Shown here: piece by piece, positions 2,482 to 60,100 of the stretch
Layout: each line of letters opens with the position of its first letter
Position numbering within the stretch: position 1 is the stretch's first letter
NCBI RefSeq assembly: GCF_963506605.1
Contig: NC_083277.1
Span: 81,964,001-82,028,000, forward strand
Direction of reading: 5' to 3'
Source: Zootoca vivipara
Taxonomy: Eukaryota
DNA length: 64,000 bases
Position numbers and translations under genes: made by a program
The notes under the pieces: model-generated
Told to the model about the DNA's origin: nothing
Database searches by the model: none
What the model saw: the letters and a program-made list of their open reading frames with translations, nothing else

Positions 2482-2487
2482 TTTATT
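2482..2487 (-). terminator. PTTG1 polyadenylation signal AATAAA
   Basis: TTTATT on the + strand, about 55 nt past the PTTG1 stop codon. Confidence 0.7.
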
Positions 2488-2541
2488 ATGAAAATTAACA
2501 CAACTTATTCAGAATTCAACTTAAAAAGAGATGTTTACATA

Positions 2542-5380: not shown

Positions 5381-6243
5381 CACTTTGACATCCAAGGATT
5401 GCTAGAATAGATATATACATTATTATTTTGTGTTTTCTTGCATGCTTGGCCTTTTGTCATCATTATAGGAGTCCAAGTATGTATCACTAGTAGTACCTAA
5501 ATCACTTTGGGAAACTCCTCCAGAACTTTCTGGAGCAAAGGCGGTGACTGGTTTAATGCATTTCTTTTAAGTGTTTGTCTTGACTAGGTACAATGCACTG
5601 GTATGTGCAGATAACTGTTAAACACTAGACAGAACTCAAAATGCAAACAAAAACTACTCACTAAAGCAGTTTAGAAAAATACGTGGTGGTGGTGACAAAG
5701 TCTTTTTTTAATTAAAAAAGCACTTTTAAAAAGTGTATATTTACAGAGGACATTCTGAAGTTAAGAACAACAGTGAACTATTGCTGCCTACTCAGAAGTA
5801 GTTCAGTTGGTCTTATTCTCAGATAAAGGCTTAAAAGAATTGCACCCTAAAATTACAGGTTTTGACACATATACCAAAGCAATACTTTCCATGTTACCAC
5901 ATACCCTTGAGTACCAGTGTTAAAAGCCAGACATTAGCATTAGAGCAGTGTAACCCAAAAAGTAACAGCAAAAAGGGAGGGGAACCCTACAAAGTGTATT
6001 CCCATCCACATTGCTCTCCATCACTTTAATGCAGTCTCACTAACTTGCCTGACCATGCGCAGGAGTACTCAGCAATAAGGCACACAGAACTCCAGGACAC
6101 CTACTGACTGCCCATCTTAAGTACAGTCAGGACAGGAGGAGTCTTAGATTGCCCTAGACCGGATTGCTTTAACTAGTATTTCTAACTCTTTTTTTAAAAA
6201 AAAGCAAACCCAAAAAGCCAGCTTCTCTTTTAGCATTACTTAC

Positions 6244-6277
6244 CTGTCTATAGAATGGACCAAACGAAACAAAGAAC
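6244..6277 (-). other. PTTG1: Candidate non-coding 5' exon of PTTG1
   Basis: On the minus strand: polypyrimidine tract...TGTCAG | 34 nt | GTAAGT, between the promoter and the ATG exon. The donor is strong; the exon could instead extend up to the TSS. Confidence 0.4.
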
Positions 6278-6539
6278 CTGACAGCAATAAGAAAAAAATT
6301 ATTTTAGTCCAAGCAAAAAAGATACAGAATTTTAGAAAAGCGGCACAACTTGTTAATAAACCTAACACCAGCACATTTGAATTACAATCGATAAGGACGA
6401 GACATTAGGAAGCAATGACCAAAAAAAGGAAACAAAATTTTAGGACAAACAAGCTTTTAAACCTCGCATCCACCCATTGCCAAATAATTGACAACACGCA
6501 CACCAAAAGCGGCACACCAACTGCAACCCAACGAGCTCT

Positions 6540-6680
6540 GCTTTCCGCACGGGTCACTTTTAAATCATGATTCTCCTTCCCCATTGGTCGTTATTCCCCG
6601 CGTGAGCCGCTGTTGATTGCTACCTCGGTAAACCAATGGCGGAGGAGAGAAGGCGGGGTTTCACGCGTTTCCGGGTCGTT
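6540..6680 (-). promoter_or_regulatory. PTTG1 G2/M-type promoter: CHR-like TTTAAA plus CCAAT boxes
   Basis: TTTAAA 6559-6564; ATTGG 6583-6587; imperfect ATTGC 33 bp further (6616-6620); CCAAT 6633-6637; GC box GGCGGG near 6652; locally CpG-rich. Confidence 0.65.
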
Positions 6681-6897
6681 AAAGAAACCAAGAGGAGGCA
6701 AAGGGACGGCAGATGAAGCTTTTTTGAAGGTGCATGAAGGTGTATTTCTTACGGGAGCAGTGCACAGTGGGAGTTCATTCCCAGCTACGTATGCGTAGGA
6801 TCAGACTGCAAAGCCCTAAAGTCACCCTTGCTCGCTGCACTCTGCGGAGTAAGACAGGAGGTCCTGGAGTGCAGCACTTTCGGGGTATAAATAATAA

Positions 6898-6981
6898 ATT
6901 GTTGTTGTTGTTACAATACTATTGTTATTGTTGTTACAATACTATTGTTACTGTTGTTACAATACTGTTGTTGTTGTTGTT
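6898..6981. repeat. Compound (TTG)n / TTGTTACAATACT microsatellite
   Basis: Directly visible in the sequence. Confidence 0.85.
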
Positions 6982-6987
6982 GGAGTA

Positions 6988-7259
6988 TAGGAGGCAGCCA
7001 TGTCGATCTGCTGCAACAAAAACAAAGAGGGTAAAGAAAATAAAAAAATCCTTCCAGTAGCACCTTAGAGACCAACTAAGTTTGTCATTGGTATGAGCTT
7101 TCATGTGCATGTACTTCTTCAGATACCTGAAATATCTGAAGAAGTGTGCATGCACACGAAAGCTCATAGCAATGACAAACTTATTTTGTCTCTAAGGTGG
7201 TACTGGGAGGAAATTTTTTATTTTGTTTCGACTACGTCAGAGCAACACGACTACCTTAC
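6988..7259. mobile_element. Diverged fold-back pair of Penelope pseudo-LTR ends with two hammerhead motifs
   Basis: Both arms resemble the pLTR at 56590-56716, in opposite orientations. The + motif at 7133-7168 has an intact core; the - motif at 7090-7127 has a damaged stem II. Confidence 0.8.
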
Positions 7260-7499
7260 TTTGAAAGAGCTAGTCCTAATCTTATTCCGGAGTCTCATTG
7301 TACTCAGCGGGATTTACTCCCAAGTAGCCGTATAAAGATTGATGCTAGCCACATTGATTAAGGCATAAGAGTCCCACCTAGTGCAGGGATGCTCATGTGG
7401 GAGTCTACAGTCACTGCAGCAGTCCTATCCAGGACGACTGCTTTGCTCCAGTGGGGTTTCCTCCTGCTGCCCTTACTAGACTGCAGCCTTTAGCTACTC

Positions 7500-8120
7500 C
7501 ACAGGAGGTTGCCGGACCAAAACCCCTCGTGGACTGGGGGCTCTAATTAAGACGCGCACCGAAAACAAAGCGCCCTGGAGTCTTAGTGGGACTTAACCCC
7601 GAGTAAATGCACGTGGGGATCGGGCTGCCTTGGTAGGCCCGGGCGGGGGACACCGAGAGTCCTTTGGAATCGGTGCACCTTTAAGAGAAAAGCGGATGGA
7701 GCGGCGCGCTGCATTGTGGGAAGCGGAAGCAAAGCGGAAGTGAGGCCTGCTTTTTGCTGCGAAGCCTGTGGCGTAGAAACGGCGGCGGTCGGGGCTGGCA
7801 GCTTCGGTAAGGCTGCATTTTGTGGCTGTCCTGCGAGTGTTACCCGGCGTAGGAGACTTTACTTCCCCCATAGGACAGCAGAGGCCGGTTCCAATTTCCT
7901 GAAAGTTGTGTTTGTTTATATTGTGTCTCCCTGGCGTTTAAAATCCCGGGAGCCTCCGTGGTGGCTGCTGTTCCTCCTCTTTCCTTTGGGTTTCGTTACA
8001 TTCTGTGTTTTCACACAGAGGAGTAAACAAAGGCTCGCTAGGCCTCTCCTCGGGACCACCTCTGGAGGTTTATTTGGTTTACTTGTTTCAGCTACGTATT
8101 TGTCGCGGGAAACACAAGAG
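7500..8120 (+). promoter_or_regulatory. SLU7: SLU7 CpG-island promoter and non-coding exon 1 (donor after 7806)
   Basis: CpG-rich; tandem ETS motifs CGGAAG at 7724-7741; donor CG|GTAAGG at 7806/7807. Confidence 0.7.
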
Positions 8121-9100
8121 GATCGTAAAAATGACTTTTTGTGCTCCTTTTCGGCTCCTTGAAATCCTTGTGGTTGGGGGAGGGGGTGTCAAAGCTGGGG
8201 CCGACCGTATAGTGAGCTCCTGCTCTAGCCTACCACCCTCCTCCCCCACTTACAGCACCTCTCTGTTAAACGCACAATTCCAGTTGTCATGCCGATTGAT
8301 CAGTACATTAACTGTTCTTGAAATTATTTGTTGGCTTCCAGTTGCTTAGATCAGATAGATGTTCTTTTGCTATGATGGCTAAGCAGGTCGTAGTTGAGGT
8401 GTTCTCATTAAACTGTTACTAATGAGAGGGAGGGGAACCCACATAAACATATGTACTGCTGTGACTAATAATGCTGACTCGTTGAGAATGGTTCATAAAG
8501 ATATAAACATTGGTGGCTACATCCTGCTAGAGGAGTCTTCTAGGGATCTATGCAGCCACAGAAGGAGTGGAGAAAATAGCTGGGAGGCTTATAACTCCCA
8601 AAGCATCAGCTAGCTAGCTTTTGGTTTCATGTTCACCTAATTTATAGGAGGTGGTAATTTATAGGAGGCAGCTTATTTAACAGTCACATTGGTGGGGTTT
8701 GAAGAGGTATTATATAATCTGTCTTGATTTAGGATTGGTGTTAAGCAGAGTGCGGTTATGATATGACACTATCTCTGCATGTTAGGATTTTTTAATCATT
8801 TCTTGGATTCATGAAGAGCTTGTGCATTTTCCCACTAATCCCAGCTGCTTCTCTTTCTGTTATCATCTCTCAGAGAGAGAATGGTGTTATATTTCATATG
8901 ATAGCTACTTTTTCTGATGGCTGTGGCCTGGCTCCAAACACTACAAGAACACCAGTGAAGGTGCAATGGGAGAATTAATACATGCAAAATACTGATTATG
9001 GTTAACATTTTGAGATTGTTCATAAGGACATGTATTGAAACAGTGTTTGATCTATTTCTGTGGCTGATAAACCTGCATTCTTCTTTGTAGGTAAAAGATC

Positions 9101-12100
9101 ATGGAATCTGGTAGTATGGAAACGATAGCTACTAACCCTCCTGGAGGGTCAAATGGCTTAGAAGAGCCTAAGAAGATGACCAGGGAGGACTGGAGGAAGA
9201 AAAAGGAATTGGAAGAACAGAGAAAACTGGGCAATGCGCCAGCAGAAGTAGATGAAGAGGGAAAGTAAGTCTAGTGTATCCCTTCATATCTGCTAGCAGT
9301 TCCCTTGTATTTCCTTCAAACTTGCACTTGTTTTATGACTTTCTGTTGTTTTATTTTTTTGAAGTTAGGAGGTATGTACCTTAAAGGAATTTCTTTCATC
9401 TTGCTTGATAGTTTTGGAATTTCTATAGCCAATGGGTAATGAAATGAATGAACTGAAATGTATGGTTTATTCCTGCCTTCAGCCTGCCTAGTCTTTTCCT
9501 AACCTTTCCAGAGTGGGGCTTCAGCCTGCCTAGTCTTTTCCTAACCTTTCCAGAGTGGGGCTTCAGCCTGCCTAGTCTTTTCCTAACCTTTCCAGAGTGG
9601 GGCAGGCAATTGGAAGGGATTGAAATCTTGAAATGTGAGGTTTTTTGAAAAAAAATTAAGCAAAAAGGAAGGGCCAAAGCTCAGTGCTCAGAATATCAAT
9701 CTGGGAGGGGAAAAGACTCACATTTCCTATATAACATGGTGTCCTTTCACAGTATTGTTAAGACAATCGAACATGGTTTTGACCCTTGATTGACTCATGG
9801 ACCCTTATGGAGAGACACTTTGATTGCCTTTATCAGAACATCTAAAACCTACTACGATCTGCCGCTATTTTCTCTCTTTTCTGCATAGATGCTAAGCTCT
9901 GTTTTCCTTGTATGGGAATGTTTTGTTACTTGAAATTAACAATCTATTTTTTAAAGTATTTTTAAAAGCATTGAATTGGGGATTCTGTTGTCGTCCCTTC
10001 TGTGGAATGAGTCTATGTACTTGGAGGCAAGACTCAATCGAGTTCAGCTGGGTGTCAGGTTCCATGATAGAGATAAGGCAGCATATACCGTAAATGTCAG
10101 AACATAATAAAATAATAATAATGAAATGATCCTAACTGTTTCCACTTAGAAGTCTCCTTGATCTCTATCTTAACATGGGAACCCTTACTGACTTAAGGTC
10201 CATCTTACCCGGTCACAAAGCATTCGCTACATTATTTTGTGGATATCTGTAACATTTACTTGTTCAACAATGCTATCATAACACAACCATATTTATTCAG
10301 AAGTTATTCCCAGTATGTTCAATGGGGCTTACTCCCACTTCAATGTGTGTTTTTTCTGTTTATTACAGAGACATCAACCCTCATATTCCTCAGTACATTT
10401 CCTCAGTCCCATGGTATATAGATCCTTCAAAAAGGCCTACACTAAAGCATCAGAGACCTCAGCCAGAGAAGCAACAAGAATTTACATTTCTAGGGGAATG
10501 GTATAAGCGAGGAGTCAAAGAGGTAGGTCACCATGATGGGAATGCTAGCACTCTAGAATGTGAATAAATCCTAAATCAGTTTGCTGTCCTTTATTTCTTA
10601 ATACTGGCATTCAAAAGATTGAGTTCAGTGATAGTTTGTCATCTTTCTGAGTATCAGATGTTGTGGGATAGTTTTACACTAGTTGACTTGCAGGGGTACA
10701 CTTCAAGCTAAGGATCAAGTTCTCTGCAATTATCATTAGATAATTAATTGTATTGTAGATCTGTTTCTTTTGCAGTCAAATGGGGCCAACTATATTCTGA
10801 TCGAGGCTGAGCAAAGGGAAGTAGGTGTGCTGTTATAGGAAGTTTTCATTTGTTTTTGTTTTTTGTTCAGAATTCTCATGCAACCAAGTACCGCAAAGGA
10901 GCATGTGAGAACTGTGGTGCCCTTACACACAAGAAGAAAGATTGCTTAGAGGTAAGCATTATTATTATTATTATTATTATTACATGAAATTGGATAAAAT
11001 TAACTGTGAATCTTGCTAACATCCTGAAAAATTAATTTCCCCAAGCTCTCTGTTACAAAAAACAATGAATAATAATGTGGCCACTTCCTTTTCTGAAGAG
11101 CAGGAACAATGCAAAGGTTGTGATCTATTTCCTTCCCTGCAGAGACCTAGAAAGGTTGGAGCCAAATTCACAGGAACCAACATTGCAGCAGATGAGCACA
11201 TGCAACCACAGCTGATGTTTGACTATGATGGAAAAAGAGACCGTTGGAATGGCTATAATCCAGAGGAGCATATGAAGATTGTAGAAGAATACGCCAAGGT
11301 TGATTTAGTAAGTAGGGTGGTGTGTTTTTTTTCCTTTAAAAAGATTCTGACAGTCTCTTGGGAAGTCGTGGCATATATCAATGTTAAAATAGGTCACTTT
11401 TTTATCTGGAGTAGAATTAATTTACACACTAACTTAGAAACAGCACCAGTAGAAATGTTTAAGGTAAGGTGCATGAAAAGCTGTGTTTTACTCAGCCAGA
11501 CCATTGAACCAAGAGTGACTTTCGAACAATGCATTTTGTCCAGTGCTGCTGTTTCGCTCATGCAGCATACTTCAGCTTGTGCAAGATAATGTCCACTTCC
11601 TCTTCTTCCTGCAGACCACCGTGGATCTTCAAAATCTCTCCAAATTGTTGGGGGGCTCTCTTGAACAGATTTTGGGGGTACACAAGGGGAGGAGGGGAAG
11701 AGGAAGTTCTGTTTGGTATGCAGAACACCACTCACACAGCAGTGGATAAATCTCACTTGTCTAGTGAAATATGCCCTCTGGTGAGAAGAACTTCTGCTTG
11801 CTAAGGATTAGTAAGTGGATTGTTCATACTGAATTTTAGTACCAAACTAGACAGATTTTAATTAAACAAAATGGTTGTTTGCATGATGAATGAAGTGGTT
11901 GTGGAAACTTTCAGTCCAATGTGAGAAGTAATCCTGCTTTCATTTTAACAGGCTAAACGCTCACTAAAAGTGCAGAAGCTCCAGGAGGAGCTGGCTTCAG
12001 GAAGGCTGACAGAGCAAGTGGTAAGTGAACTGGAAACCTTACTACCCTGATGTTTTACCAGGGATGTGTGTCCCCCTTTCTCACATGTCACCTCTGCTAT

Positions 12101-15100
12101 TAAAGTTAAAGGTATAGAATGCTGCTGAGGGCACAAATAAGTATTAGATCGGGCTTAAGGTAGATTTAAGCTACAGCCTTTGCTATGAACAAACCAATAG
12201 GAGTGTTTACTCATTTGGGCGTGCCCTTCATTTTGCAGAAGATGCTGAATTTCTTCACTAGGTGGCAGTATAAACCCTACTTTTAATATTAAAGCTTCTT
12301 TTGAACGGGGAGGAAACCAGAGCCATTTCAGGCTATTTTCTTTCAGCTTCCTCAATAAAGTTAATTTCAGTCTTGCACTTTTTAAAAACTGTTTTGAAAT
12401 TTAAAATGGAGCTTGTATACTGTGCTAATGCTACCTTTCCTTGCTGCAGAACTCCCCGCGACATAGATGGGGAGAAGATGAACCAAATTCACATACGGTA
12501 AAAAAAAAAATTCAAGAAACCTCACAAGTTACAGGAGAGAGAGAATTGTTTTTTCACAGAAAAGGGCTTGGTATATTATGAGGTGGGCAACGGGGTCCTG
12601 CTAAAGGACCAATCTAGAACTGAGCCTACCTCTGTGGGCCATTTTGATAGGTGCTTGGAACCACCCGCCTGTAAATCACCCGCCATCATATATTATGGAC
12701 AAGAAACTATGACTGTTACAAGGGAAAGGGAAAAATTGGGGGGGGGTAGGTCACCTCTTTTCCCACCCCAACCAGGGGCCTCTGATAATCAGCATCACTT
12801 TATGAAAATAAGGGAGGGTTTTTTAAAGCCTTTTTGCAGAGAGACAACAAAATTAATCAGCTGCTCTTTCAGCTCTCTGTGCTGCTTGAATTACTTGGAC
12901 CAGCTAGAGGGATGTTTTGCATCTATTTCTGGATCTAAGTGACCTGTCCTGCAAGGATGACATAGCCTTCAGCAAATCTAACCTCACTTAGATCCTAATA
13001 AATTAAAACATATATAACTCTTATAAAATTATTTTTTAATTTACAGAGCACTAATAAAATTGTGTGGAATTTTTAAGTAGTTTAAAGGCCTTCACATTTT
13101 AGATTAATTGTGCAAATGAGTTCTATACCTACTACTCTATTGAATAATACATCTTACTATGTTTTAAGGAAAGAGATCATAACAGTGAAGATGAAGATGA
13201 AGACAAATATGCAGATGACATTGATATGCCTGGACAGAATTTTGACTCCAAAAGGCGTATTACAGTCCGAAACCTGCGTATTCGGGAGGATATCGCTAAA
13301 GTAAGCAGATTCACATTAAGCCTTGTCATTGCATAGCTGCTGTCTGTGTTTTACTGGTGGATTAAAAAAGTACACAACATTCTTCTTGCCTTCATCAAGC
13401 TTTATTAAGTAATATATGCAACCAATAGTCTCTTTTAAATTTCTCATCCTTAACTGAAAATTAATTGCTTAGTGACATTAAAAAATCCATTTAACTTAAA
13501 ATAAAATGAGGATTTGATTAGCTGCATAGACATGTTGGCATTAAAAGATCTTCAAGTGATGGTTGACTCTGTTACCTGCACTGAAGCTTCAAGTCTGTAT
13601 TCTCGTGTCTTTTCAGTATTTGCGGAATCTTGATCCCAATTCTGCATACTATGATCCCAAAACCAGAGCAATGAGAGAAAATCCATATGCCAATGCCGGA
13701 AAGAATCCAGATGAGTAAGTTTGAAATTAACTTGCTTGGATTTCAAACATTAATATTTGGGTACCAGTGAACCTGTACATGACAGTGGAAGTTGTGAGAA
13801 AAGCTTTCATTAGTACTAATTTGATACTGTGGTTTTTTGGGGTGGCATCCAAAACCATGTGAGTGGACCTCACTTTTCCCTATCCGCCAGAGGTCTCCCA
13901 AACCAGGTTTTAGGGCATGCAAGGGTGGGGGAATCTGTTCTACCAACAATATCCATTCCACTGGTGAAGAAACACTGTTGGATTTCACCCATGGAAAGAA
14001 ATTTGATCTGACATCTCCATCACCCCATATCATTTGGTTGAAATTAATTATTCTGTTGAAGAATGTTTAGTCCCCCTTTATTTAGTAGAATAGCTAAATG
14101 CTGCACAGACATTCACATATCCTGCCTGAGCTCTGCGAGTGCCGCTTTCTCCCGATTGAAGTGCAGAGTGTTTGAGGACCAGGACATTCGCAGGGAAACC
14201 AAAATGCTTGTTTACAAAGCTATTGTACTACCAACCTTACTATATGCTTGTGAAACATGGCAAGTGCCATTGAGCGTATGGGGGGGACTGATACCCCAAA
14301 GCTTTTATCTCTTTCTTCCAAGCTTTACTTTGTGCTGGAGTAAGGAGTAAATAAAAATTATCTGAGTCTCTCATATTGTTTGTTACCGTAGCCAAGCTTG
14401 AGATGAGATCATGCTTTCCTTTCAAGCCTTCTGTATATAGCCAGAGGGTTCAGTGAGAGACATGGTTTTCTCTTTTGAGTTGCAGTTTGGGAAAAGTAAA
14501 AGAGCTGAAATCTCGTGTGGTCTTTTTTATCCACAGCAAGGCTGGTGAGATACCCCTGCCTCTAAGACCCACAGCACACTTGGGAGGACTTTCATGGGAA
14601 TGGGAGAGGGTTGGTGGTGAGCATAAATAGAGGCTGGCTTGTAAGTCACTGACAAATGTGGGCCCCAGATGCTGTGTAAGAAAGCTCTGTTGCAGGAGGG
14701 TAGCAGTAAATTTCTTTCTTGAGTGTGGTTTTAATCTGAAAGTTGTTTCTCATATTGCATTTTGATAATGGATGATTGCTCTGACTACAAGCATATTGCC
14801 TGAAAAGTTGGTGCATGCAGTTGAGTCTCCTCAGAGACACAAGAAGCAGGCTGGATTTTACAGGTCTATGGCAGAGTTCCTCACTTAAGTTGCTTTTAGG
14901 GGGGGTGCTGGGTCTTGTGTTGCTTATTGAAGCACATCTTTGCAAACATGGGAATGGCTTCTTTCAATGAAAGTGTCCTAACAAAGAAGAAAGAACTCAT
15001 ATTGTAATGTAAAACCACTCATACTTCCTGTGCATCCTGGTTACATACAAGGTCTTCCCTTCCAGGGTCAGTTACGCAGGTGACAACTTCGTTCGTTACA

Positions 15101-26827: not shown

Positions 26828-27784
26828 GGGTTCCCTATCGGTAGGAACCAGAGTACAGTGGTACCTTGTTTTGAGTCCGGGATGTGCGCAGAAGCACGAT
26901 TTAGTGCTTCTGCGCATGTGTGAGTGGCAAATCCGGAAGTAACCCATACTTCCAGGTTTGCCACGGATATTCAGCAAACTGGACAGTCGACGGGGTGGAC
27001 GTTCGCGGAGGTATTACTGTATATTGAGAAACAAAGCTGCTAGTAAGACTGATCTTTATTAAAGGAACTGTTGCAGCAGGGTCCTCATTCATCACACGTA
27101 GGAGGGAGGAGAACCCTGAGCAATGGTGCTTGAGCCCTTATATAGACTTTTGAAATTGCCCACCCTGTAGCCCAAGACCACCCCCCTAAAACATACATAC
27201 ATACATCACATTTCCATGTGCTCTGGTTTCCATCATGGTGTTCCGTTGCGCCAGAAGCGGTTTAGTCATGCTGGCCACATGACCCGGAAAGCTGACTGTG
27301 GACAAACACCGGCTCCCTCAGCCTGAAAGCACCGCAACCCCATAGTTGCCTTTGATTGGACTTAAGCGCCCAGGGTCCTTTACTTTTACCTTTTACCACA
27401 TACATCACAGAAGGAGGCAATCTACAGCACAAATCCTGCCTGCCAGGATACCTTATAATGGTCACTGATTGCATTACAGGTGCATGGGCAGTCCGGCAAT
27501 TCTTTTGTGATGGTTAATACTTTAGTTCCTGAATCCAGGTCACAGGCTCACCCTATTCATACACAAATACACCCTTAAGGCAGGATTTGCAAGCAAAAAG
27601 GCAATGGGAAGGTTTTCCCCATTTGCCTCCCTTCCTGCAGAGGAATATTTGAGGTCATTGGGAGAGTCAAAATGGCTTCGGGATTGCTCTCCCATGCTAT
27701 TTCAGACACATGGTTCATATATTTACATGTGTGTGCATTTATGAATATTTATTCTATATTTGAGACCTTAAAATTCTTATAACA
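26828..27784 (-). mobile_element. Solo-LTR-like repeat interrupted by a MITE and a Sauria SINE fragment (~27211-27395)
   Basis: Minus strand starts TGTTATAAG, has a TATA box (near 27140) then AATAAA (27055-27060). Homologous to the repeat split by the Penelope insertion (50315-50482 plus 56716-57150). No TSD found. Confidence 0.6.
26856..27019. mobile_element. Tc1/mariner (Tigger/pogo-like) MITE nested in an LTR-like repeat
   Basis: TA-CAGTGGTACCT...AGGTATTACTG-TA termini. Confidence 0.75.
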
Positions 27785-34745: not shown

Positions 34746-35635
34746 TATCTTCAGCTTACTTAGATAGAAGCAATAAATGATCATGGTTCTCTGCCTAATG
34801 AGACACTAAGAAACCCCCAAAGGCAAACGAAAAAGGAATAATTTATAAAGAAAGATGGATGATGACCACATTATTTTAACAGTGGAAAAAAGATTATGAT
34901 ATTCAAAATCTGGAGCTCAGCACTGAAGTATCTTCAAGAGATCACAACACAGAATGAACAGAATATTATTTTCCCTGAATCCTTGTGTCCCATAATTTTG
35001 TCCTCACAGCTACTGCAAATGTCAACTGAAGTTACCGGTAGTTGTGGAGTGTTGGATTAAGGCCAAGGAAACTCGGGTTCAAATCCCCCTAGTTCACTTG
35101 GTAACTTTGAGCTCATCACTATCCCTCAGCCAAACCTACCTCACAGGGTTGTTGTGAGGATAAAATGGAGGAAGGGCAGAAGCATGTATGCTGCTTTGAA
35201 ATCCTTGGAGGGGAGGCAGTGTTGTTAATGAATGATAATTGGTAAAGGAAAGAAGATAAATAGAAACCAACAATATGTATCAGCCACTTGATGCTTTAAT
35301 GTTGTATGTATATTGCCACCTAGTGACTACCACCTTCATTGCACAAGGTGCTGCCTGAACAATACAATTTTGCAACCAAGCACTGGTGTTTTCACAATAA
35401 AAGTGCCTTTTAACATGCTCACTGCACATACAAGCAAACAATGCTATGCAGTTTTAAATGTAAAGAAATCCAGGTGTGTTTTTTTTCCAATCAGCTGAGG
35501 GTGGGTGGCTTCCCATTTGCATTTGCACAAGAGTAAACATTTACCAGCCTTAGATACGTTTCACAATGGGCAAAATAGGGACTCGTGTTGTTGTTGTTTT
35601 TATGGGAAGCAGTATCTATTTCCATTTGTTTTTTG

Positions 35636-35831
35636 GTAGGTAGCCGTGTTGGTCTGAGTCGAAGCAAAATAAAAAAATTCCTTCAGTAGCACCTTAAAGA
35701 CCAACTAAGTTTATATTTTGGTATGAGCTTTCGTGTGCATGCACACTTCTTGTGTGCATGCACACGAAAGCTCATACCAAAATATAAACTTAGTTGGTCT
35801 TTAAGGTGCTACTGAAAGAATTTTTTTATTT
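35636..35831. mobile_element. Palindromic mini-insertion made of two opposed Penelope pLTR 3' ends
   Basis: Near-perfect ~90-bp inverted arms centred on GTGTGCATGCACAC-TTCTT-GTGTGCATGCACAC; TSD CATTTGTTTTTTGG (35623-35636 and 35832-35845). Confidence 0.9.
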
Positions 35832-48100: not shown

Positions 48101-51100
48101 AAGCCATCAGGTGCAGCATGCCTCTCGTTGAATCTACTGCAATTATACTCTTGTACAGTAAATATTTATTGTAAATGAAGAGTTGTGTTCATGGGGTGGG
48201 GTGCAAAGGTGGTGCTTTGAGTTGTACAGTGAGCGTTGTAGAGTTCCTTGCTAGCTGGAAGTCGGGGTGTTTTGGTTTTAGGCAACTTTTCTGGAAAGCT
48301 GGAACCTTCAAAGACAGCCAGCTCAACTCCATCCCTGACAGGGATGCTTTTTAAACCTTCATCTGGAATCTGCTGAGGTCAAATGAGATGTTGCCTCTTG
48401 GAACAAGACTGGAGGGTTCAGTCTAATTGTTATGTTAGCTTGTGAATGGGCCTTGTGTCTAAATAGACAGATAAGCGTGTTTGCCTGAGGAAATGGGTCC
48501 TCTTCACCGTCACATAAATATTTACAGTGCCGTCCTTTTATGTAAGAGGTCTTATCTTGCAATTGGTTAAGAAGTAATTCACAAACTTTTAAAAACTAAT
48601 TTCGTCCCATTTTCATACTTTTAATACCGTGGACCTGTAAATGGGATTCAACTTTAAATTTCTTGTCTGGGCTGGGCTGCAATTTCATTTTATGCAGTTT
48701 GATTAAATAGTGCCCAAAAATGACTATGTAAGTCATTGAAAAGTTATTGACTTGTTCTGAATCCGTAAATGGGTAGTTTCTACATTCTTTATTTGGAGAG
48801 CCAACAATGGAAGATAAACTTTTCTTTTGAATTTGCCTTTGGATTCCAACCTTCTGCTGAATTTGCCTCTAGGGCAAACAAGACCTGAAGCCAACTCCTT
48901 GAGTGCCTAAATTAACATGTCTTAAGTTTTCTAGTGTAGGTAGCAGCTGTTGGGGCCCTGAGCAGGATTGAGATGTTTAATCCAACACACACACACACAC
49001 ACACACACACACCGGGGGGGGGAGCGCTTTCCCCAGGTCTAATAGGTGTGACACAGTTGTTAATGAAAAGGCGCTGTGGGTTAAACCACAGAGTCTAGGG
49101 CAGGGGTCCCCAAACTACGGCCCCTGGGCCGGATGCGGCCCAATTGGCCTCCCAATCCGGCCTGCGACGACCCCCGCCGCCCGCTGCCGCCGCCCGCTCT
49201 TACACCGCGCGGCGCGGCGACGATCTTCAAAATCGGCAAAAAATTGCCGAAAATCCTTTGTGCGCATGCGTATGGGCCTCTCCCGACCCAGAAGAGGTCA
49301 TTTCCGATGCACTTCCGGGTCGGGGGAGGCCCATACACATGCGCACAAGCGTTTTTCGGCAATTTTTTCCCGACCGTGTGCGCATGCGCACGGGCGCGCA
49401 CTCCCCTGCCCTCCGGCCCGCTGCGCGGTAAGTCTGGGGACCCCTGGTCTAGGGCTTGCTGATCAGAAGGTCGGCGGTTTGAATCCCTGCAATGGGGTGA
49501 GCTCCCGTTGCTCGGTCCCAGCTCCTGCCCACCTAGCAGTTCAAAAGCACATCAAAGTGCAAGTAGATAAATAGCCGGCGGGAAGGTAAACGGCGTTTCC
49601 GTGCGTTGCTCTGGTTCGCCAGAAGCAGCTTTGTCATGCTGGTCAAATGACCCGGAAGCTGTCTGCGGACAAACGCCGGCTCCCTCGGCCTATAGAGCGA
49701 GATGAGCGCCGCAACCGCAGAGTCGGACACGACTGGACCTGATGGTTAGGGGCGCCTTTACCTTTACCTTTTTAGGATTGGTTTTAACTATGTTTTGAAT
49801 ATTGTATTTTTTGTATTTTATCTTTGTTTGCATTGTACACTGCTTTGGTGACCTCAGGCTGTCAAGCAGTTTATAGATTTGTACAATAAATAAAATAATA
49901 GCCCCCCTTAAAAACTAACAATTATTGTGGCAGTCAATGAAAGATTATACCTTCATAAATGTGTTGGTCTTTAATGGGTGCAGCAGACTGTTAGTTTCTT
50001 TATAAATAATGTTGGTTCCTGGCCTTGAGCCCTGTGGGAGGGGATTGCTAGCTGATGGTGGGTGGTGGTGGTGGTTTAGTGTGGCTCTCCCCCTGCCCAT
50101 TGCCTGATTCTTAGGAGTATGAATAGTTGTTGCAAGTTTTCATTGTCTTTCAAAACTGGTTGAATATTCATCCAGAACAAGAGCTGGGTTGCTTTTTACT
50201 GCGTTAGTTGCTAAGCACTTGCCAGAACAGGTGGTGGATGGTGATCTGTGGCTTTTGGCTTCTGAAATGGATATTCATGTCATTGTAAACAAAATCTGCC
50301 CTTATAGAGTCCTTTGTAGGTTCTCCATCGGTAGGAGAAATAACAGAGGCCAGTCAGAGAATATTGAGAAGCAAAGCAGCTAGTAAGCCTGATCTTTATT
50401 GAACTGTTGCAACAGGGTGCTCCCCTCACACGCAGGAGAAGGGAGGGGGACCCAGAACAAAGGTGTGCCTGCCCTTAATATAATAAAAAAATTCCTTCAG
50501 TAGCACCTTAAAGACCAACTAAGTTTTTATTTTGGTATGAGCTTTCGTGTGCATGCACACTTCTTCAGATACAGTGAAATGGAAGTTTCCAGGCACTTAT
50601 GTAGAGAAGGGGTGGGGAGGGGTGGGGATGGGGAGGGGGGATCACTCAGAAGGGTGGTGGAAATGGGTGATTGACTGACTGATAGCTGTTGATGACCGCA
50701 AACGACTGCAAATGGTTTTGCATGAAAAAGCAAGGGTTGAGATGGCTGAAGATCGCTTATCATGTATAATGAGATAAGAACCCGATATCTCTGTTCAAAC
50801 CAGGTCCCTCCATGGTTTTGAGCTTGGTGATAAGTTGCAATTCAGCAACTTCTCTTTCCAGTCTATTTCTGAAATTCTTTTGTAGTAAGACAGCTACTTT
50901 GAGATCTTGTATAGAATGTCCTGGGAGATTGAAGTGTTCTCCTACTGGTTTTTCTGTCTTCTGGTTCCTGATGTCAGATTTATGTCCATTTATCCTTTGG
51001 CGTAGGGTTTGGCCTGTTTGTCCAATATAGAGAGCTGAAGGGCACTGTTGGCATTTGATGGCATACACAATGTTAGAGGATGAGCAATTAAATAGTCCTG

Positions 51101-54100
51101 AGATGGTATGTTGGATGTTGTTGGGGCCAGTAATGGTGTTGTCTGGGTGTATGTGGCAGCAAAGTTGGCATCTGGGTTTATTGCAGGCTCTGGTACCAGT
51201 GTCCATGTTAAGTCTGGTGGTTGTATTATTGTGGGTGAGGAGTTGTTTAAGATTGGGTGGCTGTCTGTAGGCAATGAAAGGTCTTCCTCCCAGAGCTTGA
51301 GAAAGGGAGCGGTCATTGTCCAGGAGAGGCTGTAGATCTCTGATGATGCGTTGTACTGTTTTAGCTTGGGAGCTGTATGTGATGACTAGTGGTGTTCTGT
51401 TATTTTCTTTTTTGGGTCTGTCTTGCAGCAGGTTCTCTCTAGGTATCTGTCTGGCTCTGTTGATCTGTTGTTTAACTTCATCAGGTGGATATTTTAGTTC
51501 TAAAAAGGTTTGCTGTAGATCTCTTAGGTGAGATTCTCTGTCTGTAGAGTTGGAACAGATGCGGTTGTAACGTAAGGCCTGGCTGTATACGATGGATTGT
51601 TTGGTATGTTTGGGATGGTAGCTAGAAGCATGTAGATATGTTTGTCGGTCAGTTGGTTTTCTGTATAAGGTGGTGTCTATACGTCCATCCTGTATTTTTA
51701 TAGTAGTGTCCAAAAAATGTATTTCTTGCATAGATTGGTTCATTGTTAGGTTGATGGTGGGGTGAAAGTCATTGAATGTCTGGTGGAAGGTTTCCAGGGT
51801 CTGTTGTCCATGTGTCCAGATAATAAAAATATCGTCAATGTATCGCAGGTACAGGAGAGGTTTGAGTGGGTAGGAGTTAAGGAAACGTTGTTCTAAATCT
51901 GCCATGAAGATGTTGGCATACTGTGGGGCCATGCGGGTGCCCATGGCTGTGCCGCTGATCTGGAGGAACAGGTCATCACCAAATTTGAAGTGGTTGTGGG
52001 TAAGGACAAAGTGGCAGAGTTTGGTAGCAAAGTTCGCTGTGGTTTTATCTGAAATGGTGTTCCTTATGGCTTGTAAACCATCATTGTGTGGGATGTTGGT
52101 ATATAGAGATTCCACATCCATAGTGGCTAGTATAGTATTGTTAGGAAGATTGTTCAAATATTGTATTTTCCTCAGAAAATCTGTGGTGTCACGTACGTAG
52201 CTGGGAGCACTGATAGCATATGGTTTCAGAACAGAGTCCATATAGCCGGAAACACCCACTGTAATGGTGCCAATACCTGAGATGATGGGGCGTCCTGGGT
52301 TTCCTGGTTTGTGTATTTTGGGTAGAAGATAGAAAGTTCCTGGCCGAGGTTCCGCTGGTGTGTTTGTGAGGATCTGTTCTTGGATGTGTAGGGGTAGCTC
52401 CTTAATAATCTTGTTCAGTTCTTTTTTGTATGCTTGTGTGGGGTCTGAGTCCAATTTCATGTAAAAGGCAGTATTGGAAAGTTGTCTGTGGGCCTCTTGG
52501 ATGTAATCAGTTTTGTTCATGATGACGACAGCTCCACCCTTGTCTGCCTCTTTAATTATAATGTCTGGGTTGTTCCTGAGATTTTCTATGGCTCTCCTTT
52601 CAGCATGGTTTAGATTTTGTTGTAAGCGATGGTGTTTTCTGGTCACATCCGTTTGGATTCTGTGGCGGAAGCATTCGATGTACAGATCTAGTGTGGTATT
52701 GCGTCCATCAGGAGGGGTCCATGTGGAGTCCCTTTTTGTGTAACTTCTTTTCGGTGATAGTTGGTGGTCAATGTTCTGTTCATTGATGCGTTTGGAGGGT
52801 GATGGTTGTTCCCCAGTAAGTTGAGAGGTGTTGTGTTGTGGGGATGTAGTTTGTTCTACTTTGTCTTGTTCTTGTGTGTGATGAAAATACTCCTTCAGGC
52901 GTAAACGGCGGAAAAATGCTTCCAGGTCCCCGCAGAACTGAATCATGTGTTGGGATTTGGCAGGGCAGAATGATAGTCCCCGTGAAAGGACGGATTCCTC
53001 AGCTGGGCTGAGTGTTTGCTGTGAAAGATTGACAATGTTGTTGATCTTGTTTTGATTGGTGGCCTGTAGGTTGGAAAGGTTGCAGAGTTTTTTATTTTTC
53101 TGGTTCTTCAGTAACTCCAGTTGAGAGTGGTAAATGGTTTGTTTTTCCTTGTGGAACTTCTGCCAGGCCGGGTGATTCCTGATGGAGTTCTCCAGTGCAG
53201 AGAGTTCCTCCTTTATTAACTTCTGTTTGGAATACAGAACGCCGATAAGATGTTTCAGCAGTTTCTTAGATAAAGTGTGGCATAGTTTTCTGGCATATTC
53301 TGTGGGATAAGTTGATTGAAGAGGGTTCTTAATTCTAAGACCCTTAGGTACAATGTCCAGGTTTTTGCATTTAGATAGAAAGAGGATGTCAGTTTGTACC
53401 TGGGCAAGTTTCTTGGTGAGGTTGATGGACTTCCATTTCATGCGGCTCAATGTGGTGCCTTCCATAGTTCTGGTTACAGGTAGGTAGCCGTGTTGGTCTG
53501 GATCGAAGTAAAATAAAAAAATTCCTTCAGTAGCACCTTAAAGACCAACTAAGTTTTTATTTTGGTATGAGCTTTCGTGTGCATGCACACTTCTTCAGAT
53601 ACAGTGAAATGGAAGTTTCCAGGCACTTATGTAGAGAAGGGGTGGGGAGGGGTGGGGATGGGGAGGGGGGATCACTCAGAAGGGTGGTGGAAATGGGTGA
53701 TTGACTGACTGATAGCTGTTGATGACCGCAAACGACTGCAAATGGTTTTGCATGAAAAAGCAAGGGTTGAGATGGCTGAAGATCGCTTATCATGTATAAT
53801 GAGATAAGAACCCGATATCTCTGTTCAAACCAGGTCCCTCCATGGTTTTGAGCTTGGTGATAAGTTGCAATTCAGCAACTTCTCTTTCCAGTCTATTTCT
53901 GAAATTCTTTTGTAGTAAGACAGCTACTTTGAGATCTTGTATAGAATGTCCTGGGAGATTGAAGTGTTCTCCTACTGGTTTTTCTGTCTTCTGGTTCCTG
54001 ATGTCAGATTTATGTCCATTTATCCTTTGGCGTAGGGTTTGGCCTGTTTGTCCAATATAGAGAGCTGAAGGGCACTGTTGGCATTTGATGGCATACACAA

Positions 54101-57100
54101 TGTTAGAGGATGAGCAATTAAATAGTCCTGAGATGGTATGTTGGATGTTGTTGGGGCCAGTAATGGTGTTGTCTGGGTGTATGTGGCAGCAAAGTTGGCA
54201 TCTGGGTTTATTGCAGGCTCTGGTACCAGTGTCCATGTTAAGTCTGGTGGTTGTATTATTGTGGGTGAGGAGTTGTTTAAGATTGGGTGGCTGTCTGTAG
54301 GCAATGAAAGGTCTTCCTCCCAGAGCTTGAGAAAGGGAGCGGTCATTGTCCAGGAGAGGCTGTAGATCTCTGATGATGCGTTGTACTGTTTTAGCTTGGG
54401 AGCTGTATGTGATGACTAGTGGTGTTCTGTTATTTTCTTTTTTGGGTCTGTCTTGCAGCAGGTTCTCTCTAGGTATCTGTCTGGCTCTGTTGATCTGTTG
54501 TTTAACTTCATCAGGTGGATATTTTAGTTCTAAAAAGGTTTGCTGTAGATCTCTTAGGTGAGATTCTCTGTCTGTAGAGTTGGAACAGATGCGGTTGTAA
54601 CGTAAGGCCTGGCTGTATACGATGGATTGTTTGGTATGTTTGGGATGGTAGCTAGAAGCATGTAGATATGTTTGTCGGTCAGTTGGTTTTCTGTATAAGG
54701 TGGTGTCTATACGTCCATCCTGTATTTTTATAGTAGTGTCCAAAAAATGTATTTCTTGCATAGATTGGTTCATTGTTAGGTTGATGGTGGGGTGAAAGTC
54801 ATTGAATGTCTGGTGGAAGGTTTCCAGGGTCTGTTGTCCATGTGTCCAGATAATAAAAATATCGTCAATGTATCGCAGGTACAGGAGAGGTTTGAGTGGG
54901 TAGGAGTTAAGGAAACGTTGTTCTAAATCTGCCATGAAGATGTTGGCATACTGTGGGGCCATGCGGGTGCCCATGGCTGTGCCGCTGATCTGGAGGAACA
55001 GGTCATCACCAAATTTGAAGTGGTTGTGGGTAAGGACAAAGTGGCAGAGTTTGGTAGCAAAGTTCGCTGTGGTTTTATCTGAAATGGTGTTCCTTATGGC
55101 TTGTAAACCATCATTGTGTGGGATGTTGGTATATAGAGATTCCACATCCATAGTTTGTGGAATTTGGTGATGACCAAATTTGGTGATGACCTGTTCCTCC
55201 AGATCAGCGGCACAGCCATGGGCACCCGCATGGCCCCACAGTATGCCAACATCTTCATGGCAGATTTAGAACAACGTTTCCTTAACTCCTACCCACTCAA
55301 ACCTCTCCTGTACCTGCGATACATTGACGATATTTTTATTATCTGGACACATGGACAACAGACCCTGGAAACCTTCCACCAGACATTCAATGACTTTCAC
55401 CCCACCATCAACCTAACAATGAACCAATCTATGCAAGAAATACATTTTTTGGACACTACTATAAAAATACAGGATGGACGTATAGACACCACCTTATACA
55501 GAAAACCAACTGACCGACAAACATATCTACATGCTTCTAGCTACCATCCCAAACATACCAAACAATCCATCGTATACAGCCAGGCCTTACGTTACAACCG
55601 CATCTGTTCCAACTCTACAGACAGAGAATCTCACCTAAGAGATCTACAGCAAACCTTTTTAGAACTAAAATATCCACCTGATGAAGTTAAACAACAGATC
55701 AACAGAGCCAGACAGATACCTAGAGAGAACCTGCTGCAAGACAGACCCAAAAAAGAAAATAACAGAACACCACTAGTCATCACATACAGCTCCCAAGCTA
55801 AAACAGTACAACGCATCATCAGAGATCTACAGCCTCTCCTGGACAATGACCGCTCCCTTTCTCAAGCTCTGGGAGGAAGACCTTTCATTGCCTACAGACA
55901 GCCACCCAATCTTAAACAACTCCTCACCCACAATAATACAACCACCAGACTTAACATGGACACTGGTACCAGAGCCTGCAATAAACCCAGATGCCAACTT
56001 TGCTGCCACATACACCCAGACAACACCATTACTGGCCCCAACAACATCCAACATACCATCTCAGGACTATTTAATTGCTCATCCTCTAACATTGTGTATG
56101 CCATCAAATGCCAACAGTGCCCTTCAGCTCTCTATATTGGACAAACAGGCCAAACCCTACGCCAAAGGATAAATGGACATAAATCTGACATCAGGAACCA
56201 GAAGACAGAAAAACCAGTAGGAGAACACTTCAATCTCCCAGGACATTCTATACAAGATCTCAAAGTAGCTGTCTTACTACAAAAGAATTTCAGAAATAGA
56301 CTGGAAAGAGAAGTTGCTGAATTGCAACTTATCACCAAGCTCAAAACCATGGAGGGACCTGGTTTGAACAGAGATATCGGGTTCTTATCTCATTATACAT
56401 GATAAGCGATCTTCAGCCATCTCAACCCTTGCTTTTTCATGCAAAACCATTTGCAGTCGTTTGCGGTCATCAACAGCTATCAGTCAGTCAATCACCCATT
56501 TCCACCACCCTTCTGAGTGATCCCCCCTCCCCATCCCCACCCCTCCCCACCCCTTCTCTACATAAGTGCCTGGAAACTTCCATTTCACTGTATCTGAAGA
56601 AGTGTGCATGCACACGAAAGCTCATACCAAAATAAAAACTTAGTTGGTCTTTAAGGTGCTACTGAAGGAATTTTTTTATTTTACTTCGATCCAGACCAAC
56701 ACGGCTACCTACCTGTGCCCTTAATATAGACATTTTAAATTGCCTGCCCTGGAGTCCAAGACCAGACATAGATCACAAAAGGGGTGTAGCCCAAGACCAC
56801 CCCCCAGATACATCATACCTACATCACAGAAAAGGCGGTCTACAACAGAAATTTGAATGTTGTTGTTTTTCCTGTCTGCCAGGTTACCTGATACTGCCTT
56901 ATCTGATTGCCTTTCCTGGTAGTCTGGCCATTCCTTTGAGATGGTAATTACTTAATTCCTGAGAAAATGGGAAGGTTTCTTTCACCTCCTCCATCCTTGC
57001 AGAGAAACACTTGGTCAGCTTGGGAGTCATCATGGTTTCAGGACTGTCTTCCTGTACTGTTTAAGAATTGGTTTATATATTTATGTACGTGTTTGCCTTG

Positions 57101-60100
57101 TACATTTATGAACATTTATTATATATCTAAGACCTTAAATTCTTATAACAATGTTAATACCCCTTCTCTCTGTCTGTCTCTCTCTCTCTCTCTTTCTTTT
57201 CTCCCCCTCCTTTGTGTTGCCATAGGAGCTGAAACTGCCCGTGTACAAGGCCCATTCTCCGCAAATCGGGATGCGGCGCTATTTTGCCGACCTCTTGGCC
57301 ATCCTCAGCAACCGCTGCCAGCTCTGCCCCACAGCCCGACACCTTGCTGTGTACTTGCTCGATCTCTTTATGGACCGCTATGATGTTGCTGTCAAACAGC
57401 TATATGTCATCTCCATTGCCTGCCTCCTCCTTGCAAGTGAGTATGCTTGCCTATTAATGCATACATGCTGTTGCGGTTATTACTTGTCCGGGGGGGGGGG
57501 GGGACAAGTAAGCTGTTTATCGGTTAAATGCCCTGAGCTGATGAAAACATTTTTTATTTCAATTCATTAAACGAAATATTTATTTTGAGCAGGTACCATC
57601 TACAGCATTTTAGAAACCATGAAACAGGAAAAGACTTATTGGTCCTGCCCAGAGGAGTATGATATAGTTGACTATTGCTCTTTGCAGTTTCTGATGCTTT
57701 TAGAACAGAGTATCAACAACTTTACCTAGAATTTCCTGCAGTGATGTACTTCGTTTTTGCTCGTATGGGGAGGAGCCTGAAGCTTCAAGCTGTGCTTAAG
57801 AGAAAAGGGATTCTCAGCTGTTACAGAGAGTAATATGTTCAATTTTCTGCCCTTTAAATTAGGCCATGGGTGATGCTTTTCCTTCAGATCACCCCTTGCA
57901 TTACTGTAGTATTCAGAGCCTGTGGGGCCCATCACATTGATATTTAAATATTACTCGATAATTGTGGAATGAGCCCATGGAAAGGGGTTCCTGTTACATT
58001 TAAAGGGCACCTTTGACTCCCTGCCATATTATATTCATGGAGAGCAGATACTGTGCCAGTTTATTCTCAAACTGCAGCCCTTTCCATGTACTTGCCTAGT
58101 GATCCATCCTGAGTTATATCCTCCTAGAATCCCTTTAGTTTTGGGCCACTTTAGAAAAACATAGTTGTCAGCCTTGCAGAGAGACACATGTCCTAATAAC
58201 CCAAAGCTTCGTACAAGGGAGAAAATGCAGGTGGGTAGCTTTGGAACCGACCCTAGGAGGAGCCTTCCACAATGATGTGCCCTGTGCGTGGTCCTCTCTG
58301 ACCACTGGCCATGCTAGTTGAGGCTGATGGTGAATTGGTGTCCGCTCGAGGGATCCCACTGCCATCCAGTGCCTTCGCTCCATAAGACGCACAGACATTT
58401 CCCCTTCGTTTTTAGGAGGGGAAAAGTGTGTCTTATGGAGCGAAAAATGCAGTTTTTGCCAACCTCATGCTGGCATAGCTTGTCCTGTTAGCATGTTGTA
58501 TATATTCCTGTCCAAAGCTGCTATACTGATATAATATTTTGTCCGTTTAAGGATGAGCATTGTGTCACAGTTTTGGGGTTTTTTTTTGTTTTCTTTAAGT
58601 TAGGCCAGTCCTTGATGAGGGTGGCCCCGGTGTTTTCAGAAGCACCTAGATTCCAAGGGAGCAATCTAGAAAGGGAGATAAGGAAGTGGTTGTAAAACTA
58701 CAAAAGCAGGAGAAGCTGTTTGGTGTCTTATGGCTGCTACCCTTCCTCAGTCCATTGTCTGGCCTTTGTATTCCGCTCTGGTAAAAAGGCGGGGCAGGGC
58801 AGGGAAGAAAACTTTTCTACTGCATGTTATCTTAAATCCTGCTAGGCTGGAAAAATATTGATGGCAAATAAAAGAAACTTGTCAAACTGGAGGAAAAAGA
58901 ATTCTTGGAATTTGTTAAAGTAGAGACTGGACTGGGTTCTTCCAAGGCCTATAAATTTAAATGTTGACCAGTACCTGTTGGAAGAGTTGGGATAGTTGTT
59001 TAAATTGCACTTTCCTATTAGAAATAGTTGACATAAAATAAAAGTGTATAATCAGATAACCAGATTGAACATAACATGTATTTTCCTCCTTTGAAGTGTG
59101 GGCCAGCTTTTTCCCCATATGTGCTGGTCTTGTTATGTACTGTATTGCATCTTTATGTAAAATAATACATTGCTTTCACACATTGTGAGCTGCCATAATT
59201 TTATGCTCTGTACTATTTGTGTTGGACTAGAGCAGGCATAGGCAACTCTGCCCTCCAGACGTTTTTGGACTACAATTCCCATCACCCCTAGCTAACAGGA
59301 CCAGTGGTCAGGGATTATGGGAGTTGTAGTCCCAAAACATCTGGAGGGCCGAGTTTGCCTATGCCTGGACTAGAGCTTATCCCATACAGCAGCAACGGCT
59401 GGCTGATGAATCTATGAATTCTGGGTTTTTCAGCATTGGCTTCTAGCTGAGTTCAGGAGAATCTAGATGGAGAGAATGCCTTGAACCCAAGCGGCTTGTT
59501 CTTTCTTTTCAATAGGCAAGTTTGAAGAGAAGGAAGACAAGGTGCCCAAACTGGACCAGCTGAACAGCTTTGCTTACATGTGTAGCCTTAACCTGGCGCT
59601 AACGAAGAAAGACCTGCTGAAGATGGAACTTCTGCTCCTGGAAAATTTTAACTGGAATCTCTGTCTGCCAACCCCAGCACATTACATTGATTACTACCTC
59701 TTTGCCTCTGTTAGCGAGAGCGATCTGCACAATGGCTGGCCTATCACGTCCGTGACCAAAGTCAGAGCTTTCATGGAGAAATATTCTCACTATTTCCTGG
59801 AAGTCTCGCTGCAAGGTAATTTCTTGATCCAAAGGCCCAAGGCACACGTCTGCCTTGCAGTAGCCTTTATCAGGATTATAGCAGTCCTTAGACATGGGGA
59901 AACATTGTGTTTAATGCAAATGCCACCAAAATATTTGCCTCACCTTAGAAAAGGCATGAAATCTAAAGCTCAGGCTTTGGCAAAGGGACCTCTTGTTCTT
60001 TGAGGTCTTGTTTTGGGGTTAGGCATACTCTGGACCAAGCTAACCCACAACTCTTGTTTTAATATATGGGGGCTGGGTAGAAGCTGCCACAAGTAGAATT

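Follow-up and report, generated by a model that had tools for sequence, protein, structure and literature searches.

A recent insertion of an intact, putatively Neptune-type Penelope-like element with tandem and inverted copies in Zootoca vivipara

The stretch of Zootoca vivipara DNA analysed here, 64,000 nucleotides (nt) of contig NC_083277.1 (assembly GCF_963506605.1, positions 81,964,001 to 82,028,000 of the forward strand) and referred to below as the window, contains a real and very recent insertion of an intact Penelope-like element (PLE). The insert measures 6259 bp, and the element is oriented along the minus strand; unit positions are numbered from the predicted cut of its hammerhead ribozyme, with +1 at base 53568 on that strand. 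Read 5' to 3', a truncated unit runs into a complete unit and then into a further 57 nt, forming a long arm of 1.54 tandem units, which is followed by a 20-nt filler and by a 5'-truncated arm on the plus strand (Table 1). The truncated 5' ends of the two arms meet head-to-head, and both element 3' ends face outward. Comparison of the region with itself returns a direct repeat with a period of exactly 3030 bp and a perfect inverted repeat of 1542 bp. The two tandem units are identical over 1643 nt (50482-52124 against 53512-55154), as are the inverted arm and the long arm over 1542 nt (55175-56716 against the reverse complement of 53476-55017), although polishing of repeats during assembly could partly account for the zero differences between copies. 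The hinge filler comprises an 8-nt snap-back copy of unit positions 1452-1459 and then a duplicate of positions 1587-1597, with the arm proper beginning at 1582. This composition is a probable signature of microhomology and template switching, since short multiple switches would be expected where two complementary DNA (cDNA) 3' ends join. A symmetric fold-back artefact was considered and rejected: the ends of the arms are offset by 36 nt and the two flanks are not alike.

A 13-bp target site duplication (TSD), TGCCCTTAATATA, encloses the whole structure. When the insert and one TSD copy are removed, the rebuilt empty site is colinear with an older paralogous repeat at 27021-27180 (79% identity). 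Because of this TSD and the colinear empty site, the entire 6.2 kb is regarded as one discrete insertion at a single site. The host site is itself an older interspersed repeat (50083-50469 and 56729-56770), and 23 kb upstream, at 27021-27210, there is a paralogue of it with 79% identity. In the DNA runs the left flank has a high copy number, and the junction between this high-copy repeat and the element is bridged by none of the contigs listed from those runs.

A preliminary description of the locus had proposed a unit of exactly 3030 bp, three copies without differences and a single 13-bp TSD around the whole, all of which are borne out by these comparisons. The number and identity of the copies stand, but the inversion of the third had gone unstated; it lies head-to-head behind the filler and does not continue the tandem. 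In the same account the copy began some 55 nt past the cut, crossed the cut twice and continued for another 1.6 kb. These segments correspond to the terminal 57 nt and to the 1586-nt upstream unit, except that the apparent beginning, as read on the plus strand, is the 3' end of the element. The layout, in which a partial tandem is joined by a truncated copy in inverse orientation and by a one-sided tail of 30-40 bp, is the canonical Penelope structure (PMC8557442, PMC3846280). It has also been described in rotifer and Naiad PLEs (PMC8557442, PMC3846280) and in D. virilis no other Penelope structure is as frequent (PMC2377424); neither this structure nor the hypothesis of a circular template is new.

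The complete unit contains one open reading frame (ORF) on the minus strand (53465..50760) that encodes 901 aa, in which a reverse transcriptase (RT) domain (RVT_1, residues 433-577, E 2.4e-12) precedes a C-terminal GIY-YIG endonuclease domain (residues 799-840, E 5.3e-05). Inspection places the catalytic YIDD motif at residue 542 and, upstream of the endonuclease, a CNKPRCQLC linker at residues 761-769, which is of the CX2-5CxxC zinc-finger type (here CX4CxxC). Two cysteines between IVY and YIG (residues 799-815), together with downstream histidines, form a CCHH motif. The CCHH motif is general in canonical PLE endonucleases, while the CX2-5CxxC linker is missing from Penelope and Poseidon (Craig et al. 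2021, PMC8557442). Since the linker is present here, the label Neptune-type given in the preliminary description is supported on the architecture of the endonuclease and its linker rather than on phylogeny, and the element may be assigned to this type; Neptune itself is paraphyletic in published trees (PMC8557442). The element thus combines the features of endonuclease-bearing (EN+) PLEs: one ORF with RT followed by C-terminal GIY-YIG, the CCHH motif, a pseudo-long terminal repeat (pseudo-LTR) with inverted copy and tail inside one TSD, and a hammerhead in the terminal repeat. A leader of 103 nt separates the predicted cleavage site from the ATG at +104, and a trailer of about 190 nt lies between the stop codon and the hammerhead; together with the domain matches, these values agree with the 901-aa RT/GIY-YIG ORF, leader of about 100 nt and trailer of about 190 nt reported previously. 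The nearest named relatives are unannotated turtle PLE reverse transcriptases (65-71% identity) and one public contig reaches 95%, while the exact 901-aa protein is absent from a collection of 15 billion proteins.

The hammerhead motif has the sequence GUAU-CUGAAGA-A-GUGUGCAUGCACAC-GAAA-GCUC/AUAC (the slash marks the predicted cut) in every copy. All core positions can be read by inspection, namely C3 U4 G5 A6 N7 G8 A9, G12 A13 A14, the A15.1-U16.1 pair and H17 before the cut. Helix I is short (4 bp) and helix II long, an A stands unpaired ahead of stem II, and helix III is not closed, features that have also been described for the minimal hammerheads of PLEs (Cervera and de la Peña 2014, PMC4209133). 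The 34-nt motif occurs five times in the window, with three exact copies in the insert, against a chance expectation of none. The Rfam hammerhead models give no match at E up to 1 over 49500-57500, and the motif call is therefore one of inspection; minimal forms that lack a closed helix III would be expected to escape these models. Stem II is palindromic, as is the AGCU of helix III, and two motif copies are predicted to cofold at -32.2 kcal/mol, compared with -7.6 for each as a monomer. Minimal PLE hammerheads cleave poorly in vitro (PMC4209133). The overall predicted fold of the junction region is no better than that of shuffled sequence (z -0.72), and a local predicted 8-bp pairing of +20-27 with the AGACCAAC of the tail shows no covariation in a decayed copy. 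In addition, an AATAAA at 53555-53562 on the minus strand (unit +7 to +14) stands right after the predicted cleavage site; because it precedes both putative RT start sites discussed below, a transcript polyadenylated there would be without them.

Table 1. Components of the insertion and their positions in the window
Feature	Position	Strand	Basis or remark
Left TSD copy, TGCCCTTAATATA	50470..50482	.	Last 1-3 bases ambiguous with element 3' end; empty-site colinearity
Long-arm 3' terminal segment, unit +1 to +57, ending at the putative 'short' RT start site	50482..50538	-	
Minimal hammerhead motif, copy 1; predicted cleavage between 50539 and 50538	50535..50568	-	
Complete 3030-nt unit between successive predicted cleavage sites (leader, ORF, trailer, hammerhead)	50539..53568	-	
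Intact 901-aa ORF	50760..53465	-	Translation and domain search
Internal tail copy, 36 nt and AC-rich, unit +58 to +93, spanning the interval that separates the two 3' ends	53476..53511	-	
Minimal hammerhead motif, copy 2, where the units join seamlessly; predicted cleavage between 53569 and 53568	53565..53598	-	
Upstream 5'-truncated unit, positions 1445-3030 (C-terminal 453 aa, trailer, hammerhead), identical to the full unit	53569..55154	-	
20-nt hinge filler	55155..55174	.	Snap-back copy and element duplicate
Inverted 5'-truncated arm, unit 1582-3030 plus +1 to +93, tail-bearing, ending at the putative 'long' start site	55175..56716	+	
Minimal hammerhead motif, copy 3	56594..56627	+	
36-nt tail, at the right insertion end only	56681..56716	+	
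Right copy of the 13-bp TSD	56716..56728	.	

The two arms terminate at different positions, the long arm at +57 and the inverted arm at +93, and the intervening 36 nt are AC-rich. This two-end pattern is not specific to the locus, as it recurs in three mini-insertions of the window and in family-wide hot spots of the reads. The mini-insertion at 7037-7256 is an older head-to-head pair (79-91% identity) with arm ends at about +59 and +87. That at 35635-35831 has head-to-head arms of about 85-120 nt, ends at about +90 and +58 and the TSD CATTTGTTTTTTGG on both sides; in appearance it resembles a miniature inverted-repeat transposable element, yet it bears the PLE two-end signature. The third, at 46539-46653, ends at +96 and +40 inside a 16-bp TSD (CTCATTGAAAACAGTT). 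The hinge of the mini-insertions is located on the palindromic stem II of the hammerhead. In two RNA runs, reads leave the family sequence at 53510-53514 (+55 to +59) and at 53470-53473 (+96 to +99), while 5' truncation points cluster at 53596-53603, which is hammerhead stem II and not the cut site. The PLE 'tail' is known as an extension of 30-40 bp that is often found at one end only (PMC8557442). In each of the four insertions, a shorter end is combined with a long one that bears the tail, and none has two ends alike, an outcome with a chance of 1 in 16 if the ends chose independently and equally between two sites.

A framework for these ends is offered by the Poseidon protein of Anolis, which cleaves and extends both DNA strands in vitro (Frangieh et al. 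2024, PMC11167929). Its RT starts at two adjacent internal RNA sites, in an AC-rich stem-loop and without target homology (PMC11167929). The distal start lies 111-118 nt into the Poseidon ORF and the ribozyme cut 26 nt into it (PMC11167929), which places that start about 85-92 nt past the cut, near the +93 observed here. By analogy, the odd 3' end positions would be explained by internal RT initiation at two adjacent sites. The pairing of ends in just four insertions is a hint that each half of a single complex takes one of the start sites, perhaps with both halves acting on one RNA. The distance that separates hammerhead and start site in Anolis Poseidon also appears to hold in a Neptune-type element whose ORF start is shifted.

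The RNA evidence comes from the same two runs, of which about 6% each was read (tissue unknown), with a pile-up listed where it reached at least a fifth of local depth. Within this sample, in which most reads derive from single-motif mini-insertions, no pile-up of molecule beginnings or ends occurs at 53569/53568 or 50539/50538. Between 82% and 89% of placed reads continue into unrelated sequence, and most are therefore taken to be mini-insertions inside other transcripts; depth over the 5' half of the ORF is only 0-9. At 53626-53628, about 30 nt upstream of the hammerhead, 5 and 6 molecules begin (local depth 16, run X22), very small numbers that could reflect a transcription start in the trailer/pseudo-LTR. 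In run X10, contig depth falls from about 1.7 million in the bin of the hammerhead and tail to 5,000-15,000 over the N-terminal part of the ORF, a steep gradient of 5' truncation which indicates that full-length copies are a small minority of the family. The window copy has A at 52757, where essentially all other copies (X10, X1) and all RNA reads have G. At 52034 (unit 1535) it has T, and the same T is found in both tandem units (52034 and 55064), compared with C in 72,987 of 73,011 depth units of run X10 and in the only X1 contig. Since the T and A of the window differ from the C and G of the family, the copies expressed in these runs are mainly other loci. The near-private T in both units further indicates that the tandem was built recently from one sequence lineage and not inherited as an old structure.

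The layout places a clear demand on the RNA template. As both start sites are 3' of the cut, no cDNA can exceed 57 or 93 nt without passing through it, and the three seamless crossings, combined with 3' ends downstream of the cut, mean that the copied RNA ran without a break through the cleavage site, being either uncleaved or religated. This upholds the earlier conclusion that the cDNA read through the cleavage junction from an uncleaved multimer or a re-ligated circle. Of the rolling-circle layout proposed at the same time, the continuous template is required, but the circle itself is neither required nor favoured. As far as the sequence goes, a linear transcript of a tandem donor, a circle or a precise end-to-end jump would fit alike. 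A template jump with re-initiation at the preferred sites was rejected: it would duplicate the leader at the junction, which is seamless. The longest arm comprises 1.54 units, and there is no multi-lap cDNA at the locus beyond the capacity of a tandem donor.

On balance, the insertion is probably a single recent event by the normal route of the family, with an autonomous, Neptune-type PLE as its source and an unprocessed linear transcript of a tandem donor as the most likely template. What is directly observed comprises the anatomy, the identity of the copies, the TSD with its empty site, the domains of the protein and the recurring ends; the following order of events and the linear template may be inferred. 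An AT-rich site would be cut by the GIY-YIG endonuclease on both strands, with 13 bp between the cuts, and RT would be primed by each exposed 3'-OH at an internal position of the element RNA, about +57 for one and about +93 for the other, their spacing giving the 36-nt tail. One cDNA would extend for 4.67 kb (1.54 units) and the other for 1.54 kb, after which their 3' ends would be joined head-to-head through snap-back and microhomology switches. The RNA would exceed one unit in length and run uninterrupted through the ribozyme site, most likely as an unprocessed linear transcript of a tandem donor array. Ribozyme cleavage may then serve another purpose, such as trimming upstream sequence and permitting translation of the ORF 103 nt downstream. 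This suggests a division of labour in which cleaved RNA, with its 5'-OH end, is translated while uncleaved RNA acts as the template. Self-cleaving motifs enable cap-independent translation in other systems (PMC13725137). For Poseidon, ribozyme-dead RNA inserts as well as wild type in vitro, unprocessed multi-copy RNA has been judged the dominant substrate, and Anolis has no RNA-seq reads ending at the ribozyme site (PMC11167929). Several points weigh against a linear donor transcript. The test for RNA cleavage ends is weak, having low power, and the in vitro data were obtained with an element of another PLE clade. To reach back to position 1445 of the upstream unit, a linear template needs a donor of about two or more units or an outside promoter, and no such donor has been seen, with no genome-wide census made. 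The shared near-private T likewise needs a step that duplicates the unit, be it a circle, a template switch, homing or unequal crossover.

A circular-RNA, more-than-unit template for PLEs was proposed explicitly in 2014 (PMC4209133). Under this proposal, which is unlikely for the present insertion, paired hammerheads would cut out a 3030-nt monomer, a host RNA ligase would close it, and RT starting from +57 or +93 would lap it more than once. The single hammerhead left in the circle would be inactive, and the circle would both encode the RT/endonuclease and act as its own template, details that are equally doubtful. The position of the start sites just 3' of the cut speaks for such a route, since a cleaved linear monomer would give cDNAs of at most 93 nt and closure would restore continuity; the seamless junction and the exact 3030-nt unit also fit. 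The predicted preference of the hammerhead for the dimer (-32.2 against -7.6 each) would suit viroid-style cutting of multimers that spares circles (PMC4209133), and animal retrozymes derived from PLE terminal repeats form circular RNAs that are thought to be copied into tandem cDNA (PMC7229834; 2026 preprint). The near-private allele common to both tandem units is in keeping with a circle as well, but unequal crossover, homing or a template switch would serve too, and reads that span the junction fit a circle and a tandem transcript alike. Only 1.54 units were copied, however, which is within the capacity of a tandem donor; molecule ends do not pile up at the cut in the two RNA runs (at low power) or in Anolis, and ribozyme-dead RNA inserts equally well in vitro (PMC11167929). 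The poor cleavage of minimal PLE hammerheads in vitro (PMC4209133) points the same way, and among the papers available to the analysis a literature search found no report of a full-length PLE circle. The evidence here thus lends the circle no specific support, the continuous template and the shared near-private allele being compatible with it, and its chances are considered slim.

It is also quite improbable that the tandem arose without any RNA longer than a unit, either through a precise end-to-end RT jump between sibling RNAs or through two events in quick succession. In the latter version, a first insertion, truncated and twin-armed, would receive in its tail, by homing, a second copy from the same donor, the 5' end of which would be joined by homology. 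The PLE endonuclease has been reported to recognise its own tail, and Poseidon was assayed on its own ORF-pseudo-LTR junction as target (PMC11167929); moreover, the hinge displays several polymerase template switches within 20 nt. A re-initiating jump would nevertheless leave a duplicate of +1 to +57 or +1 to +93 at a junction that is seamless, and there is one TSD with none internal. All copies also carry the same alleles at family-polymorphic sites, which makes a single event the simpler account. It is very improbable that the internal arrangement was produced by misassembly or by later rearrangement of the insert (through a fold-back chimera, a collapsed or expanded repeat, or unequal crossover, for example) rather than by one retrotransposition. 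Identical tandem and inverted repeats of 1.5 kb are hard to assemble, polishing can erase differences, and the left flank is itself repetitive; against this, the flanks differ, the 13-bp TSD is perfect and the empty site colinear, the arms end at different positions that are each a known hot spot, the hinge bears a non-trivial filler, and the layout is canonical for PLEs. The linear tandem-donor transcript accordingly stays the preferred template.

In the surroundings of the insertion, an inverted repeat of 62 nt (89% complementary, 17-nt spacer) is found at 49233-49373, about 1.1 kb away. Neighbouring ORFs of at least 130 aa give no Pfam match.

The copy does not represent a new kind of element. 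Its value is that of a clean natural specimen for how PLEs rebuild tandem pseudo-LTRs and for the role of the hammerhead, being intact, the product of one event, composed of identical copies, flanked by an exact TSD, terminated at both putative internal start sites and marked by a shared near-private allele.

Like Penelope of D. virilis and PLEs in general, the element has a single ORF with RT and C-terminal GIY-YIG, a full-length copy preceded by a variably 5'-truncated tandem copy (the pseudo-LTR), an adjoining inverted 5'-truncated copy and a tail of 30-40 bp at one end only, as well as a TSD of the variable-length kind, an AT-rich target and no poly(A) (Evgen'ev and Arkhipova; PMC2377424, PMC8557442, PMC3846280). 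Unlike Penelope, it resides in a vertebrate host, its upstream partial copy is long (1586 nt, 453 codons) and not a short pseudo-LTR, and it possesses the CX2-5CxxC linker that Penelope and Poseidon lack. With the Neptune clade, which is found in fish, amphibians, reptiles and cnidarians, it shares the C-terminal GIY-YIG domain with CCHH and upstream CX2-5CxxC linker and the minimal hammerhead in the terminal repeat.

In vitro work has established that both target strands serve as primers for Poseidon_Ac (PAc) of Anolis carolinensis (PMC11167929), a feature deduced from sequence for the element here. The two also have in common a pair of adjacent internal RT start sites, putative in the present element, whose spacing equals the tail, an AC-rich start region, a distal start about 85-93 nt past the hammerhead cut and, at low power in the present runs, an absence of observed RNA ends at the ribozyme site. 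PAc belongs to another clade, however, and its ORF begins inside the hammerhead with the start sites within the ORF, whereas in the present element the ATG comes only after the hammerhead and both start sites. In L1 twin priming, reportedly described by Ostertag and Kazazian in 2001, both nicked strands are likewise said to prime cDNAs that are joined by microhomology, leaving an inversion inside one TSD. The L1 arms are copied from different, non-overlapping parts of the RNA, whereas both arms here start in the 3' region of the element and overlap fully.

Retrozymes, which comprise plant LTR and animal non-LTR forms, resemble the element in that same-strand tandem hammerheads of a dimer-dependent type define the unit, and those of animals are related to PLE terminal repeats. 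They differ in being 170-1000 nt long, non-coding and non-autonomous, with circles that have been demonstrated experimentally, whereas the unit described here is 3030 nt long, coding and characterised from its DNA. If the circle were nevertheless to apply, this vertebrate would harbour a circular-RNA retroelement that is autonomous and encodes protein, and that would be the autonomous partner of the animal retrozymes.

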